Shown one piece after another: positions 16,501-21,994 of a stretch of 64,000 bases of DNA. The notes under the pieces were generated by a model. The model did no database searches, had not been told where the DNA came from, and was given only the letters and a program-made list of their open reading frames with translations. How positions within the stretch are numbered: position 1 is the stretch's first letter; every line of letters begins with the position of its first letter. The translations under genes were made by a program, and so were the position numbers. The stretch spans positions 186,001 to 250,000 of IMG/VR virus record IMGVR_UViG_3300027985_000918. One strand, given 5' to 3'.

Positions 16501-17283
16501 CTATTCTGGGGTATCGCCGAACATAGAAAGGATGTCCTTGGGGTCAGTGTGGTTCTGCCACAGAGCTTCCTTACTCACCTTCCCTCCGTGCTTGGCATTA
16601 CTGGCTTTTATGTCCAGATAGGGCTCGAAGGGAAGCCAGTTAGCCCCTACATTCTCACACACCATGACCTGCCCTTTTCTCCCTCGGCACCACTCCCCTA
16701 GACGCTCAAAGTCAATATCTGTCGAACTACACTTGTAGTATTTTCCGGCCTTGGCATAAGGAGGATCGATGAACCAAGTCGCCTCAATGTCAGGAGCATC
16801 CTCATAGCTACTCTCGATCAGAGTCCAATGCCGAATATGGTCCACCTGGGAGGCGATTCGTCGCTTCACAGGGGACCCCCATCCAACATTGAACGACCTG
16901 CTAGATGCCTTGCCAAACTCTCCCCCTCTGTGCCTGCGAGCCCAGGAACTCAAAGTTTTGCCGGGTCCGGTACCCGCCTGATTGAGCCACCAACCGATCA
17001 AATACCGGGCTTCCTCACACACATTCAGATCCTCCACGCTCTGGCCCTCTTGAATGTCCGGAAGGGCCAGAATTTCCTCGGGTTTGACCCGAATCAGGTA
17101 CTTCCATGTGGCGGCGATCACCGGATCCTTTTCGATCAGGATGATGTTTTTTTTGTGGTGGTATACCGAGTACCCGGCCCCCCCGCAAAAAGGTTCCACA
17201 ATGGTATCGTAGTCTGGCTCAGGGTAATGGGGAGCCGCCCGATACTTCCCGCCGTAGAAGTAGAAAAAAGGCTTAAGGATCAT
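16501..17283 (-). CDS. DNA adenine methyltransferase (Dam-like, D12 class)
   Basis: FYFYGGK, IVEPFCGGAG (motif I) and FIDPPY (motif IV) in alpha-class order. Confidence 0.9.
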   Translation of the reverse strand: MILKPFFYFYGGKYRAAPHYPEPDYDTIVEPFCGGAGYSVYHHKKNIILIEKDPVIAATWKYLIRVKPEEILALPDIQEGQSVEDLNVCEEARYLIGWWLNQAGTGPGKTLSSWARRHRGGEFGKASSRSFNVGWGSPVKRRIASQVDHIRHWTLIESSYEDAPDIEATWFIDPPYAKAGKYYKCSSTDIDFERLGEWCRGRKGQVMVCENVGANWLPFEPYLDIKASNAKHGGKVSKEALWQNHTDPKDILSMFGDTPE

Positions 17284-17309: not shown

Positions 17310-18896
17310 TTAAATTGGCTTATAGCCCACCATGAAAGGTTCCCAAGATGGGCGGAGGGCAGTTCCGTACCCCTCCCATAGAGCGGCTTCGGATGAGGCG
17401 GCTTTCGTGAGGTACTGCACCCCAGCGGACCCGGCATCCCCTTCCCCCTTGAAACCGTCAACCTCCCCTGCGTTTTTCCGCTTGGAGTTGGGTCGGCTGG
17501 AGGGATTGACTCCTACCACCTCTCGCTGTTCCTCAACACCCAGATACTTGTCGATGCCCCTGCTGACGTTGAGGTTCTTCGGAAATCCGGAATTCCCCGT
17601 GATGAACACTTTGTCCTTGCGGCGAGCCAGGAAAGCACCTGAGGGCACCCGGACGCACCAGACAACACCCTTATACGAGGTCTCAGACTCTCGGAGATGC
17701 CGAGACTGGAACTGCGTCTGAGGGATCATGTGGAGGCTCACTGAGCCCTTGTCGAAGTTTACCCGCCCCTGGCGATCCATTAGGTGGGCCAGGGTCTGAA
17801 ACCAGACCAGATCCCGGGGGTCTTTCTGGTACAATACGGGACACCCGCTCTCGGTAGACCCGTCACTCTTGATGGCAACGCTCACGAAAGCGTGTTTTTC
17901 CTCCTGGCTCATCCCCCACAGTAGCTTCCAGGTGGGGTGTTTGCCCGGCAGGTCCTCCCGCACCCGCTGGGCCGTCTCTCCCGAGAAGAACCAACAGAAC
18001 TCGGTGTCCGGACGGCCCTTGTGCCCCCGATCACAAAGGGACACTTCGTGTTCTGGCACGAGCTTGTCCAGCAGATCCTGAATCTCCTGGACATGTTCGG
18101 GGTTGACCGAACTCTGATAAATGCGGACCCCCGTACCCTTGTCGTCGAAGCCGCCCTTCGCCCAAACCCATGCCAGAAGGCGAGCCCAGTCCGGACCCCC
18201 GATCCCCTGACCGTGGTGCATCCCAGCCAAAGGCAGGAACATGTGGTTCCACCGAGGGATCAGTCCAGCTTCCTTGACATCCCACTTCGGCTCGTACCAC
18301 GACCAGAGGCCCCCTGCCTCCATCTTACGGTGCTGGGGGCGATGGTAGACCCGGTGGTTGGGGGTCAGGAGCTGATCGGTATTGTCGTTGCGGAATACGG
18401 TCATCTGGCCCTCGAAAGGTGCCCGGATAACTTCTGCCACAGCCTCCAACTGGATGGTGCTGGTCTCCGCATCCCAGGCAGCCACCTTTTCCCCCTGCTG
18501 GACATCCACACCCAGCTTCCAGCCCTCAGCGGTCAGAATCTCGGTATCCTCGGACAAGCAGCCATAACCCCACGCCTCCATCTTGAGGTCCTGGAACCCC
18601 ACCTCTTCGAGCACCTGGGCCAAACGGTGGTAGGTTCGGGTGGCCGAGAACACCTTGACCACCCCACCGGGCTTGAGCTTTCGGTACACCAGGGACCACA
18701 GCTCAGCCGAGAAGGCAACACCGGAGCGGTCCCAGTCCTTGGACATGAATCCAATCTCAAGTCACTCGTAGGGAGGATCAGTGACGATTGCGACGACCGA
18801 GTCGTCGTCCATCTCCTGAATGCGGACAGTGCAGTCCCCAAGCAGGAGGCGGAACGTCAGATCCTCCCTACGAGCCTTGGCAATCTCCTTCGGCAC
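17310..18896 (-). CDS. Beta-class N4/N6 DNA methyltransferase, N-terminal catalytic fragment; in-frame TGA at 18762-18764; contains intein
   Basis: LLLGDC..IVTDPPYE*LEIGFMSKDWD..KLKPGG..TRTYHRL..WGYG|intein|SGFPKNLNVSRGIDK..WEGYGTALRPSWEPF..KP. It lacks the FxGxG motif. Start is GTG 18896 (GGAGG RBS) or ATG 18980. Confidence 0.85.
17592..18560 (-). mobile_element. Intein (323 aa) in DNA methyltransferase, probably degenerate LAGLIDADG
   Basis: Starts CLSEDTEILT and ends KVFITGN followed by Ser. Excision restores WGYG-SGFPK. Endonuclease block C reads LLAWVWAKG. Confidence 0.92.
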
Positions 18897-19069: not shown

Positions 19070-19369
19070 CTATCTCCTGCCTTCTCGGTTGACGGAGCAC
19101 GCCTCGATGGCACTGCAGCTCTGGATCTCGGCCAGGCAAGTCGGGTTGAGGGCGTGACCCTGTTTCTGAGTGACCTCGCAGAATACCTGGCAGGTCGTCC
19201 CATCCTCCAGCGGGGCAGCCTCCGGGCACCTCAGCTCGGCCATCTTGTCGCAGGCTGCCTTGCACATGTGGGTGTCGTTGGGCTCAATAGGGTTCGGGCG
19301 GAGGAAACTGGTGCAGGACAGGGCACCCGCCAGCAACACCGCCCCCAGCAATGCGATCAGCTTCTTCAC
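19070..19369 (-). CDS. Cys-rich lipoprotein
   Basis: Signal peptide with lipobox MKKLIALLGAVLLAGALSC, then 8 further Cys in about 80 aa. Confidence 0.8.
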   Translation of the reverse strand: MKKLIALLGAVLLAGALSCTSFLRPNPIEPNDTHMCKAACDKMAELRCPEAAPLEDGTTCQVFCEVTQKQGHALNPTCLAEIQSCSAIEACSVNREGRR

Positions 19370-19372
19370 GGC

Positions 19373-20170
19373 TTACTCCTTGAAGGGCTCCCAGCCGGCC
19401 TGGGGGACCCAGAACGATTTGGAGACGGGAGAGGCAATGGTCTCGGGAGCCACGATTCCGAACCCGTCCTCCCCCCAGTAAGCCCCCCATGAGTTCTCGA
19501 TGATGAAGTTTCCGCCGACGAACCCCACAATGACGATGGCGTGACGACCCCTTTTCGCATCCTCTGCCACTGGCATCAACGGTCTTAGGGGACCGTTTTC
19601 CTTCCAGTGCATACTCCAGGCCCTATCCACGTTGGTCCCGAACACTACCGGGTTCCCCGCCCGGAGGCAGTTGATGACCTCGTCCACCCGGTTGTTGCCG
19701 GTGGACTGGATCTGGTAGAACGCCTTGACCTTGGTCAGGTACGCCTTCCGCATCGCCATGAAGCTGGGGGGCGTGTTGATCTTGTCCGGGTCGAACGGCC
19801 AATCCTTTTCCGGGGGAACGCCGAACCTCCGCAGAGCGTCAAAAGCGTGTCCGATGTAAGTTCCGTCGTCGACATGGGTCTCAGGAGGCTTCATCATCTC
19901 CCGGGCTAGGTAGTAGACAGCCATCCGACTCAAGTCCACATGGGCAGCATGACCGTACTTCTGGATGCGCTTGATCTCCAGAGCTTTAACCGTGGAGTTC
20001 GCCACACAGGAGTTGGTCCACTGCTGATCATGGCGGGGGCTGGAGAACGGACGGAGGTCGGGTTCGGGGTCTCCGCCGACGACCATCTTCGGCTTGAGCA
20101 GGGCTTCGTATGACCAGTGCTTCGAGGAGGCCGGGTCAGCTCGGAACCCCCCCAACGGATAGGTTCTCAT
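19373..20170 (-). CDS. Papain-like cysteine peptidase (family C1A)
   Basis: QQWTNSCVA (Gln, Cys), RHAIVIVG (His), IENSWG (Asn), WGEDGFG. Confidence 0.92.
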   Translation of the reverse strand: MRTYPLGGFRADPASSKHWSYEALLKPKMVVGGDPEPDLRPFSSPRHDQQWTNSCVANSTVKALEIKRIQKYGHAAHVDLSRMAVYYLAREMMKPPETHVDDGTYIGHAFDALRRFGVPPEKDWPFDPDKINTPPSFMAMRKAYLTKVKAFYQIQSTGNNRVDEVINCLRAGNPVVFGTNVDRAWSMHWKENGPLRPLMPVAEDAKRGRHAIVIVGFVGGNFIIENSWGAYWGEDGFGIVAPETIASPVSKSFWVPQAGWEPFKE

Positions 20171-20559: not shown

Positions 20560-21353
20560 TCTCCTTCAAACATCAAGTCGAACAGGTTAGGCTCCGTTTC
20601 CACGAGTGCTTCCGCCGCATACCTTTTCTCAGTCTGGAGGTTCAGCAATCTCTGGCCGGGGTGAACCTGACTCCAGTGCTCCAGCCGTGCGGTGGCAATC
20701 TCCACGTACTCGGGCGTCATGTCGATGCCGGTGAAGTCGTGACCCGTCCGCAGACAGGCGATGCCCGTACTTGCCGTCCCCATGAAGGGGTCAAGGATGT
20801 GACCCTGGGGAACATCCCTCAGAAGGTTGTGGAGGAGCCTCCAGGGCTTTAGGGTTGGATGGTCGTTGTGGACCTCTTTGACCGTGCGGGAGGCCCCTGC
20901 ACGGGGGCTTCTGAGGCCATCCGAACCCTCTTTACGCCCGGTGGCCTCCGCCCCGGACTTACCTGGAAGATGCCCGCAGCCGGCTTCCCTTTCCGCTCGT
21001 CCTACCTTGGGGACGTAATGGAAGGGGTCCGTAGCGTCCTCGACCACCAGGATGGTGTCCCGGATCTCGAACCCCCCGTCTTCGAGGTTTACTGCCCCCC
21101 GGTGTCCGAGGGGGTTCCCCTCGGGAGCAACCACTAGCATGTGGGCTCCCGGCTTAAGGACCCGCATCATCTCAGCGGTGTCCTCTTCCGTCGGAGTCCC
21201 CACTGCCAGGATGCCCGTCACGGTCTCGTCTTTCACCGACGACCAGTTCATCTCCTGAATGTCAGGGATGAACATCGCCCCCGGGTGGGGATCCGGGGGC
21301 GACAGGAAGGTGAGCAGATACTTGACCATGTCCGAGGGGAGGGGTCTGCTCAT
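20556..21353 (-). CDS. C-terminal (SAM-binding) fragment of beta-class DNA methyltransferase with degenerate N-part
   Basis: RVLKPG and LEDGGFEIRD but no DPPY, then FHYVPK..RAEREAG, NDHPTLKP, ILDPFMGTASTG, FTGID..YVEIATARL. Confidence 0.88.
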   Translation of the reverse strand: MSRPLPSDMVKYLLTFLSPPDPHPGAMFIPDIQEMNWSSVKDETVTGILAVGTPTEEDTAEMMRVLKPGAHMLVVAPEGNPLGHRGAVNLEDGGFEIRDTILVVEDATDPFHYVPKVGRAEREAGCGHLPGKSGAEATGRKEGSDGLRSPRAGASRTVKEVHNDHPTLKPWRLLHNLLRDVPQGHILDPFMGTASTGIACLRTGHDFTGIDMTPEYVEIATARLEHWSQVHPGQRLLNLQTEKRYAAEALVETEPNLFDLMFEGE

Positions 21354-21994
21354 TTGCTCTCTCGAATCTCGTCCACGAGACCGTACTTAAGGGCGGTCTC
21401 GGGATCCAGCCACAGGTCCCGCTTGAGGGTTAGGGCCAACTTACGGGCCGGGATCTTGGTCCGCTCCTGGTAGATCGCCTTGACGTGATCCATCAATAGG
21501 GTGGAGTTCGCCAGATCGTCCTTCTGCTCCTCGAAAGTGCCACTGAACCACGTCGAAAGCTGGTGGATCAGAATGAACCCATGCTTGCCGATAGTCCGGT
21601 GGGTCCCCGCCACCGACATGAGGGTAGCAGCCGAAGCGGTAGCACCCTCGATGTGGGTGTGGACATCCAGTGGGCACTCCCGGATGGCGTCATGGAGGGC
21701 GAATCCGGCGAACAGGTCCCCTCCGTGAGAGTTGATGTGCAGATGGATAGGCGGTGGAACAACCCCCCACGTCAGGGCCATCCGCTGCAGGTCCAAAGCG
21801 GTCTCCCGGATGTCAAGGATGAGGGACGCCGCCGACTCTTCGGACACGTCCTCGTAGAAATACAGGTGGTTCCGATCCCGAGAGGATTCCTTCCCCAAGC
21901 TCATAGCCTGGGGCATTCCGGCCTTGATGATGGTGATCGGGGGCAGCTCTTCCACTTCTTCCGCCCCATTCGCCCAGTGTCGCCTTCGAGTCAT
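21350..21994 (-). CDS. clpP: ClpP-like serine protease
   Basis: LHINSHGG, ASAAT (Ser), LIHQ (His), KRDLWL (Asp), ALKYGLVDEI. Confidence 0.92.
   Translation of the reverse strand: MTRRRHWANGAEEVEELPPITIIKAGMPQAMSLGKESSRDRNHLYFYEDVSEESAASLILDIRETALDLQRMALTWGVVPPPIHLHINSHGGDLFAGFALHDAIRECPLDVHTHIEGATASAATLMSVAGTHRTIGKHGFILIHQLSTWFSGTFEEQKDDLANSTLLMDHVKAIYQERTKIPARKLALTLKRDLWLDPETALKYGLVDEIRESK

Follow-up and report, generated by a model that had tools for sequence, protein, structure and literature searches.

Natural translational bypassing is known from very few systems. One is gene 60 of phage T4, which with its homologues in MobA cassettes carries a gap of about 50 nt with a take-off stem-loop, inside a topoisomerase subunit gene linked to a MobA-type endonuclease (Huang et al. 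1988; Manning & Atkins preprint 10.1101/2022.08.31.505936). A candidate UUA-triggered bypass of 7-10-nt inserts has been described in the terminase gene of the Streptomyces phage Hau3 (Antonov et al. [quoted passage not shown] 2014; reviewed in PMC5009743). Stop-hopping, where a P-site tRNA re-pairs to a matched codon a few nucleotides downstream over a stop, as +5, +6 and longer hops, has been seen in E. coli (Weiss et al. 1987 and later work, reviewed in PMC5009743), but in laboratory constructs or as overexpression artefacts of about 1% efficiency. The 2016 review states that no natural in-frame stop-hopping was known, and that shorter-distance counterparts of gene 60 had long been presumed to exist (PMC5009743). 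Here we examine a 9-base, stop-containing insert directly after the catalytic DPPY motif of a jumbo-phage methylase-family gene, which is one of at least 27 versions of the same tiny gap in related phages. Their shared features fit ribosomes hopping over the gap, which would make this a rare natural family of short-range bypass sites. No publication of this site was found.

Each of the described systems shares some features with this locus. As in gene 60, a stop codon directly follows the take-off codon, the gap, taken over the family of variants, is poor in G and lacks premature landing triplets, the insert sits at an invariant catalytic motif of a phage enzyme, and some lineages seem to have converted to plain split genes. 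However, the gap is 5-15 nt instead of about 50, there is no take-off stem-loop of the gene 60 type and no mini-SD in the gap, there is no sequence homology, the host gene belongs to a methyltransferase family (PF01555), and no homing endonuclease gene is attached to the gap; in a subset of variants, the prominent structure is a 5' hairpin made of the PPY codons. The Hau3 case likewise involves short (about 10 nt), frame-disrupting inserts in a conserved phage gene, a bypass inferred because homologues lack the insert, and a slow-to-decode A-site codon. There, though, the trigger is a rare sense codon tied to host physiology, few loci are covered, and there is partial experimental support, while here the trigger would be a stop codon, 27 variants lie at a single site, and the inference rests on sequence comparison alone. 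The byp elements also include take-off and landing pairs that match at only two of three positions, and behave as gain-and-loss insertions, but in a mitochondrial translation system with an unassigned A-site codon, whereas here there is one site in one gene family of bacterial viruses with standard stops. With respect to stop-hopping in E. coli, the variant L249 (variants and homologous loci are designated by L or P numbers) has the layout of a +5 hop, GGC-TA-GGC.

The protein family itself is that of the Dorothy_75 and ShiLan_65-type phage DNA methylases, known for an intein, the ShiLan out-of-frame HNH element and a second endonuclease (PMC9957025, PMC11855218), and already a known target of selfish insertions at conserved sites. 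Those papers describe no stop-containing mini-insert at DPPY, and the gap adds a fourth kind of interruption to this family.

The gap after the DPPY codons

The window analysed is a 64,000-nt stretch of a 402,383-bp contig (IMG/VR UViG_3300027985_000918), and all features of the gene lie on its minus strand. The upstream fragment (18762-18896) has a probable GTG start at 18896, preceded by a Shine-Dalgarno-like GGAGGAA at 18909-18903, and consists of 44 codons ending in VVAIVTDPPYE followed by TGA. The DPPY codons GAT CCT CCC TAC (18779-18768), catalytic motif IV of the N6/N4 methyltransferase family, place a Pro-Pro run just before the proposed take-off codon GAG (Glu; 18767-18765). This is followed directly by the TGA stop (18764-18762), the spacer CTT (18761-18759) and the proposed landing codon, an identical GAG (18758-18756). 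Coding then resumes (18755-17310) with ATT GGA TTC (18755-18747) and the ATG at 18746-18744, in frame with a 478-aa ORF (FMSKDWD ... EPFMVGYKPI) that ends with TAA at 17310 and has homologues at 53-60% identity. Removing the 9 nt gives DPPYEIGFMSKDWD, with the canonical spacing of the family; the intact homologue L029 reads DPPYEIGFMGKDWD, and this 9-nt spacing was found in 89 of the first 164 loci.

The preliminary description of the site, which proposed a programmed bypass from the sequence alone, was exact as to the sequence. A single site of this kind is nevertheless not beyond chance, as a pattern scan of the window for other junctions with a stop and matched codons gave more than 100 hits, mostly inside long ORFs in other frames. 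The contig was found only as itself and as an identical-length twin record, so that the window's own insert is not independently re-assembled. The preliminary description also pointed to a 3' hairpin, TTGGA-TTCATG-TCCAA (18754-18739). This inverted repeat is present and appears in the predicted fold, but it is built from conserved FM(S/G)K codons, the pairing is not conserved among the variants, and the local fold is no more stable than shuffles (z 0.09), so that its role as a signal is not supported and it is probably incidental. An alternative local stem of uncertain status, GUCACU (18785-18780) with AGUGAC (18766-18761), is predicted in the window, and in similar form in L255; it encloses the DPPY codons and puts the take-off codon, the stop and the first spacer base in the 3' arm.

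Interrupted homologues at the same site

The comparative test suggested in the preliminary description, whether stop-containing inserts recur at DPPY with matched flanking codons, was strongly positive, and it is from these related loci that the significance of the site comes. We found 27 distinct interrupted versions in jumbo-phage and other viral or metagenome contigs, all with the insert directly after the codon that follows DPPY, or after Tyr itself in one case, and DPPY was invariant in all loci. A stop codon directly follows the take-off codon in 27/27, and its identity changes between relatives (TGA 17, TAG 7, TAA 3). The inserts are 5-15 nt long, and only 6/27 are multiples of three. 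The landing codon shares its first two bases with the take-off codon in 22/26, against a chance rate of about 0.10 each, and is identical in 11; the pairs, Gly/Gly, Asp/Asp and Glu/Glu, co-vary (GGN/GGN, GAT/GAC, GAG/GAG). In 19 of the first 20 cognate cases, the landing codon is the first such triplet after take-off. It should be noted that these statistics treat the variants as independent, while many are related, and that matched flanking codons could also be a target-site duplication left by an insertion event.

The spacers of all variants total 114 nt and contain a single G, against a background G fraction of 0.32, while in-frame insertions at the same site in intact genes have a G fraction of 0.30. 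This is expected if premature landing on GGN or GAN triplets is selected against, and the same property is reported for gene 60 cassettes (10.1101/2022.08.31.505936). In the window itself, however, a near-cognate GAC triplet overlaps the TGA and could compete as a landing site. Removing the insert always restores the Y-x-x-x-F-M spacing. The second of these x residues (x2) is L or I in 22 of the 25 tabulated variants and Y in 3, using 7 different codons, and F is always TTY, with both codons used. Between relatives with evidently homologous inserts (for example L003/L165/L255, L166/L259 and L167a/L248a), these codons mostly differ only at third positions while the spacers diverge, L160 being an exception in x3. 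The upstream fragments of related interrupted loci are equivalent ORFs of 30-46 codons that keep the family pattern (hRLxhGDC...SVxxhhTDPPY) and between most interrupted relatives diverge mainly at third positions. The closest interrupted relative, L264, is about 70-80% identical in the flanks and keeps GAG...GAG and ATT GGA, but has TAA, an 8-nt G-free spacer (TAATACCT) and a 14-nt frame-shifting insert; in the window-L264 pair, the third-position bias of the upstream fragment is only weak. A strong 5' hairpin whose 3' arm is the PPY codons was predicted in 11/24 variants, against 3/111 intact genes, and shows compensatory changes and, in L252, a different coding register. The window lacks this hairpin.

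Candidate bypass and alternative readings

The interpretation that we favor, with moderate confidence and without experimental or read-level data, is that the 9 nt TGA-CTT-GAG (equivalently GAG-TGA-CTT) form a coding gap that ribosomes skip by programmed short-range bypass, or stop-hopping. It can be hypothesized that translation starts at the GTG of the upstream ORF and reads to DPPY-E, where peptidyl-tRNA(Glu) sits on GAG in the P site with TGA in the A site and termination is slow; the anticodon then lets go, the mRNA slides 9 nt, the same tRNA re-pairs with the identical GAG, and decoding resumes at ATT GGA TTC ATG, giving DPPYE-IGFMSKDWD as one polypeptide from which the intein is spliced out. 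Ribosomes that terminate instead would release only the 44-residue fragment, so the gap probably lowers output of the full protein, although the suggestion that a low-efficiency hop throttles a potentially toxic methylase remains a hypothesis. The shared layout argues against random lesions, genome-wide recoding and simple readthrough as a general mechanism.

In the window's own variant, which is in frame, leaky readthrough of TGA by a near-cognate tRNA, giving DPPYE-X-LE-IGFM, is formally possible. The context of TGA followed by C may favor weak termination, and the argument that three extra residues next to the catalytic motif would be harmful is weak, as 40 distinct intact relatives carry in-frame insertions of up to 141 nt at this very spot. 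However, we consider readthrough unlikely, since 21/27 variants shift the frame, one in-frame gap (L043) holds two stops, L264 has TAA and a 14-nt insert with the same GAG/GAG pair, and readthrough explains neither the G-poor spacers nor the matched codons. Reassignment of TGA, or a suppressor tRNA, was rejected, as TGA ends many long ORFs in the window, for example one of 2114 aa, no tRNA gene lies in the window, and the variants use all three stops and mostly shift the frame. Simple -1/+1 frameshifting at the take-off site was rejected as well; there is no slippery or re-pairing sequence, a slip in the CCC-CCC run would destroy the catalytic Tyr, and frameshifting is blocked by a stop in L252 (in the resumption frame) and L010 and is irrelevant for in-frame variants. 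Gaps of 5-15 nt are far too small for a self-splicing intron.

The main rival, which seems less likely but remains live, is a truly split gene, where ribosomes terminate at TGA and some re-initiate at the conserved ATG 15 nt downstream (Met of FMSK), with the two polypeptides assembling non-covalently, as do the products of genes split by homing elements in T4-like phages. The ATG of FM(G/S)K is universally present, and gene callers annotate the pieces separately, as a roughly 40-codon orphan plus an N-terminally truncated methylase; at least 34 of the 240 database proteins examined start exactly at the Met of FMGK. Moreover, six variants have a canonical start codon in the downstream frame that overlaps or abuts the end of the upstream ORF (L168 GTGA; L167b, L255 and L288 TTGA; L198 and L267 ATGGTTGA). 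This is enriched among the five exceptional variants, of which four have non-cognate landing codons (CGC twice, GTG, AGC) and one has no take-off duplicate: 3/5 carry such a start (GTGA, TTGA, ATGGTTGA) and look like split genes, against 3/22 of the cognate variants. In contrast, the window and 18 other cognate variants (19/22) have no ATG, GTG or TTG from which the codons before the conserved ATG could otherwise be translated. In these, x2 and F would be untranslated and belong to neither polypeptide, and yet they stay L/I/Y and F with synonymous variation only. The spacers, with their single G, carry no Shine-Dalgarno sequence, although these phages use strong ones such as GGAGGAA and AAGGAG. 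Nor does the split-gene model give a reason for a cognate landing codon, for its co-variation with the take-off codon, or for the stop always being the very next codon.

It is also conceivable, though doubtful, that the gene is a decaying pseudogene serving only as a carrier of a selfish intein, or that the insert is an assembly error, with the matched codons a footprint of the insertion event. One relative, L256, is an internally deleted 26-codon remnant that still has the gap. On a whole-protein tree of 38 rows, the state changes at least 6 times, and all interrupted rows lie in one 20-row clade, but this tree is dominated by the mobile intein, and close sisters differ in the x1-x3 tripeptide (GLE against LIS or LIG), so that it cannot decide between a single origin with losses and repeated gain. 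Arguing against a relic or artefact, identical inserts occur in independent assemblies of other variants (L003, L007 and L086 come from three samples, P0006 is on 12 contigs and P0041 on 9), both fragments show purifying selection, if only weakly for the upstream fragment of the window and L264, with no further lesions, and the same gap occurs in complete long-form methyltransferases that have motif I (L198 and L252).

A more speculative possibility, which we hold only tentatively, is that the inserts are a family of tiny, reversible gap cassettes that survive only because ribosomes hop over them, as a bacterial-virus counterpart of mitochondrial byps and of the gene 60 cassette. The built-in Pro-Pro-Tyr stall and a PPY-arm 5' hairpin would supply the drive for the hop, and the cassette would break a conserved DNA target (DPPY...FMGKxWD) of the homing endonucleases that plague this methylase family. 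The gene would then cycle between fused, hop-dependent and truly split states, with the 3-nt direct repeat allowing precise loss. The 27 variants, with different gap lengths, all three stops, three take-off amino acids, with and without a strong 5' hairpin, and with apparent transitions to split genes, constitute a natural mutational series for asking what minimal signals make a ribosome hop.

The methylase-family gene and its intein

The family of the host gene had to be established through homologues, since Pfam searches gave no hits for the 45-aa piece, the 478-aa ORF or the intein alone. Homologues carry PF01555, and a profile search hits CcrM (6PBD) at E 5e-3. A blastn search against sequenced phages gave only a 117-nt match to the intein/extein of mycobacteriophage methylases and no close cultured relative, and a scan of a genome collection with the Gly-type pattern gave two chance hits and no methylase, so that no cultured host was found. 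Not noted in the preliminary description, which treated the gene as a DNA methyltransferase, is that it is not a complete one. The ORF ends before the SAM-binding motif I, exactly where the ShiLan element inserts, and the short-form homologue P0129 matches only profile positions 4-90 of 221, while long forms such as L198, L012 and ShiLan gp65 have the C-terminal motifs X and I (HPTxKP ... DPFxGSGTT) in the same protein. In the window, the missing parts are held by separate ORFs at 21353-20559, where motifs X and I lie, and 20559-20170. The family is already fragmented, and working as separate pieces, as in the split-gene reading, is not alien to it. The missing motif-I half was not found downstream of the ORF, where the next gene is instead a D12/Dam-like methylase; the neighboring genes are this and a small secreted protein, with no endonuclease.

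Also not noted in the preliminary description was a 323-aa intein inside the downstream ORF (17592-18560), which lies between WGYG and SGFPKN, begins CLSEDTEILT, contains LLTPNHRV and ends VFITGN. The family is known to host an intein (PMC9957025), and the position is that of the Dorothy_75/ShiLan_65-type methylases (after WxYG and before SGFPKS). It is precisely absent from L264 (WGYG-TGFPKN), L167b and L198, and a profile search hits the Mtu RecA intein in PDB at E 1e-3. Its penultimate residue is Gly, not His.

The interrupted site and the gene that carries it

On the minus strand, the window reads GAT CCT CCC TAC (DPPY), then GAG TGA CTT GAG, then ATT GGA TTC ATG, at 18779-18744, i.e. D P P Y E stop L E I G F M, in frame with the 478-aa ORF at 18746-17310. 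Upstream of the stop is an open frame with a plausible GTG start at 18896, preceded by a GGAGGAA 6 nt before it, which gives a 44-codon ORF ending in VVAIVTDPPYE. The window comes from a 402,383-bp IMG/VR contig, presumably a jumbo phage, with a G+C content of about 60%. TGA terminates many long ORFs here and the window holds no tRNA gene. Not only is a matched codon within 20 nt of a stop common, but a scan of the window alone found more than 100 such places, and the single site is therefore not evidence by itself.

The closest homologues of the ORF (53-60% identity) are PF01555-family proteins of uncultured phages, several of them on contigs of about 436-438 kb, while more distant homologues are mycobacteriophage DNA methylases. 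Two features had not been noted in the preliminary description. First, the ORF carries a 323-aa intein at 18560-17592 on the minus strand, running from WGYG followed by CLSEDTEILT to FITGN followed by SGFPKN, which is precisely absent from homologues such as those in the interrupted loci designated L264, L167b and L198. The intein has LAGLIDADG-like motifs and its penultimate residue is Gly instead of His; Pfam finds nothing in it, although a profile search weakly matched the Mtu RecA intein in PDB. An intein at this position is already described for this methylase family (PMC9957025), and the relatives L043, L160 and L163 carry much shorter inteins (mini-inteins) at the same site. Second, the ORF ends at ...GTALRPSWEPFMVGYKPI, before motifs X and I (HPTxKP ... 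DPFxGSGTT) that the long-form relatives have. A whole clade shares this short form, ending at ...GTALKPxWEPxxVGxKP (17310-17340 on the minus strand of the window), and in a short-form homologue Pfam covers only profile positions 4-90 of 221. Interestingly, the end point coincides with the place where the ShiLan out-of-frame HNH element is inserted in mycobacteriophage ShiLan gp65 (PMC11855218), which suggests that the short forms arose by a split at that homing site.

The missing parts exist as separate ORFs about 1.4 kb upstream in the window, also on the minus strand. The 265-aa ORF at 21353-20559 carries motifs X and I (HPTLKP...LDPFMGTASTG) but has a degenerate N-terminus without DPPY, and it is followed by a 130-aa ORF at 20559-20170 equal to the KPL..GTGALDID..FPTN segment of long forms. 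The gene is therefore the DPPY-bearing portion of a fragmented methyltransferase, not a complete enzyme. Together with the DPPY pieces, the two further ORFs carry the main conserved motifs of a long-form enzyme, and this may be a multi-subunit methyltransferase.

Interrupted versions of the site in related loci

Many of the closest database proteins, 34 of the 240 examined, start exactly at the Met of FMGKxWD. We fetched their DNA, scanned IMG/VR and JGI metagenomes with profiles, and ran three degenerate DNA patterns on IMG/VR, one of them also on the genome collection, which gave 27 distinct interrupted versions of the site. In the first 164 loci fetched, 89 had the canonical 9 nt between TAY and TTY, 32 had longer in-frame insertions and 18 (redundant) were interrupted. 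Identical inserts recur in independent assemblies; L003, L007 and L086 come from three samples, and the variant P0006 lies on 12 contigs. Two variants, L198 and L252, are in complete long-form methyltransferases with motif I. Two loci, L167 (1346-3562) and L248 (101-1445), carry tandem short-form paralogues, each with its own small upstream ORF and its own gap. In L167, one paralogue has an intein and the other does not, and the second upstream ORF starts at a GTG overlapping the TGA of the first gene.

The interruption is always at the same point. In 26 variants it begins directly after the first codon following Tyr, and in one (L167b) directly after Tyr itself. A stop codon comes immediately, TGA in 17 variants, TAG in 7 and TAA in 3. 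The inserts are 5, 8, 9, 10, 11, 12, 13, 14 or 15 nt long, and only 6/27 are multiples of three. The three bases just before x2, i.e. the position that restores Y-x1-x2-x3-F-M and that we treat as the proposed landing codon, share their first two bases with the codon before the stop (the proposed take-off codon) in 22/26 variants and are identical to it in 11, where chance is about 0.10 per variant. The pair co-varies, being GGN/GGN in most, GAT/GAC in L010, and GAG/GAG in the window and L264. In 19 of the first 20 cognate cases examined, the landing codon is the first triplet after take-off with those two bases. The spacers between the stop and the landing codon total 114 nt and contain one G, while the flanking G fraction is 0.32 and in-frame insertions at the same site in intact genes have 0.30; the binomial P is about 4e-18 if bases are treated as independent.

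The codons that follow the landing site are also constrained. Among the 25 tabulated variants, x2 is Leu or Ile in 22 and Tyr in 3, using seven codons, and the Phe codon is TTC or TTT in all. Between relatives whose inserts are evidently homologous, i.e. L003/L165/L255 (14 nt), L166/L259 (12 nt) and L167a/L248a, x2-x3 differ only at third positions, although L160 differs from the latter pair at all positions of x3. Over the same divergence the stop changes identity, the spacer changes sequence and even length (9 against 11 nt), and flanking third positions are 50-60% diverged. Similarly, the upstream fragments keep the family's N-terminal pattern, and between most interrupted relatives they diverge mostly at third positions, for example [1,0,7], [3,3,10] and [5,5,12] differences per 20 codons.

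The nearest interrupted relative of the window is L264, a 223-kb IMG/VR contig, which is about 70-80% identical to the window in the flanks and lacks the intein. It reads TAC GAG TAA TAATACCT GAG ATT GGA TTC ATG, and so has the same take-off and landing GAG and the same ATT GGA, but differs in the stop, in having an 8-nt G-free spacer, and in a 14-nt insert that shifts the frame. Readthrough cannot serve there. This makes readthrough an unparsimonious explanation for the window as well, although the window's 9-nt insert is in frame.

mRNA structure and the case for bypass over a split gene

The preliminary description pointed to a small hairpin just 3' of the landing codon (18754-18739, minus strand). 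This hairpin is formed by conserved coding sequence and is not conserved in other variants, and the window's local fold is no more stable than shuffles (z 0.09). In contrast, 11 of 24 variants have a long G+C-rich hairpin whose 3' arm is the Pro-Pro-Tyr codons, ending next to the take-off codon. At least 7 contiguous pairs occur in 11/24 interrupted genes against 3/111 intact ones (Fisher 1.5e-7, not phylogenetically corrected), and the upstream 48 nt fold more stably, with a median of -17 against -10 kcal/mol. In L008, L251, L249, L256, L257, L253, the second paralogue of L167, and L252, the hairpin lies in the 45 nt before the take-off codon and is strong, at -22 to -34 kcal/mol in most of these and -18 in L252. 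The pairing is kept through compensatory changes (GGGAG/CUCCC against GGGGG/CCCCC, and CGG/CCG), and in L252 it is kept by a 5' arm encoded in a different register by different amino acids. Re-folding of mRNA behind the ribosome has been proposed as a driver of forward movement in gene 60 bypassing (10.1101/2024.12.09.627546), and it can be hypothesized that a stem whose 3' arm must leave the ribosome by about 9-12 nt would fit hops of 5-13 nt. However, the window's variant lacks this hairpin and has at most a 6-bp stem, GUCACU/AGUGAC, that includes the take-off codon and the stop.

The layout is the one described for gene 60-type cassettes, with matched Gly or Asp codons with wobble latitude, a stop in the A site, and a gap cleared of premature landing triplets and poor in G (although in the window itself a near-cognate GAC overlaps the TGA), but the distance here is much shorter and there is no sequence homology. 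Random decay, assembly error, TGA reassignment, readthrough and simple frameshifting each fail on several of the features shared by the variants. The serious rival is a split gene with re-initiation at the ATG of FMGK. For the window and 18 other cognate variants, there is no start codon from which x2-x3-F could be translated, yet those codons behave as coding; moreover, the spacer is G-free and so lacks a Shine-Dalgarno sequence, and a split gene has no need for a cognate landing codon. Nevertheless, six variants have a start codon (ATG, GTG or TTG) in the downstream frame overlapping the end of the upstream ORF, including three of the five variants that lack a cognate landing codon (Fisher 0.056), and the family already works in pieces. 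We read this as a continuum, as in the gene 60 family: most lineages, the window included, probably depend on hopping, which is inferred from sequence comparison and not shown by experiment, and a few seem to have drifted into true split genes. One variant, L256, is a decayed remnant; it has an intact gap (GGC TGA TT GGC; L256:600-700, minus strand), but its downstream ORF is only 26 codons (FMGKKWD/GWGTALKP...KP), an in-frame internal deletion of nearly the whole protein.

The matched codons could originate as a 3-nt target duplication, but that bears on origin and not on present function, and the repeat would also allow precise loss. On a tree of 38 rows, all interrupted rows fall within one 20-row clade and the state changes at least 6 times; however, that tree is dominated by the mobile intein, so that it does not resolve a single from a multiple origin. 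While the mechanism class is known, full-text searches of the open-access literature accessible to us found no description of a gap at DPPY or of bypassing in methyltransferases, and the two papers on this methylase family do not mention it. What would be new is the site, the very short distances, the number of natural variants and the hairpin formed with the Pro-Pro-Tyr codons.

Features of the DPPY site and its genomic surroundings

Why the gaps should occur at this site is a matter of inference. DPPY supplies a Pro-Pro run just before take-off; such runs would be expected to slow ribosomes, and progressive slowing is important in gene 60. The loop after DPPY tolerates insertions, and the site is a general insertion hot spot, with 40 distinct in-frame inserts in intact genes. 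For example, at the same position between DPPY-x and FMGK, the intact relatives L011 (2845-3001) and L096 carry in-frame insertions of 108-141 nt, and the L011 insert has a tandem duplication (TSASRGGSPRM twice). In addition, the DPPY...FMGKxWD DNA is highly conserved in a family known to be attacked by homing endonucleases (PMC9957025, PMC11855218), and a gap there could protect against cleavage, as the gene 60 insert protects against MobA, although no endonuclease gene adjoins the gap in the window.

Directly downstream of the methylase-family ORF, at 16501-17283 on the minus strand, lies a D12/Dam-like N6-adenine methyltransferase (MILKPFFYFYGGKY..EPFCGGAG), for which the Pfam hit is weak (E 4e-4). 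The neighbouring genes at 19070-20170 and 21350-21994, also on the minus strand, are a papain-family (Peptidase_C1) protease, a 99-aa Cys-rich protein with a signal or lipoprotein-like N-terminus, and a ClpP-like protease. A Peptidase_C1 gene is also next to the methylase in L003 and L168. Further along the window, a run of very large ORFs (2114, 1969, 1264, 1235 and 1816 aa) lies on the minus strand at 36798-63744.
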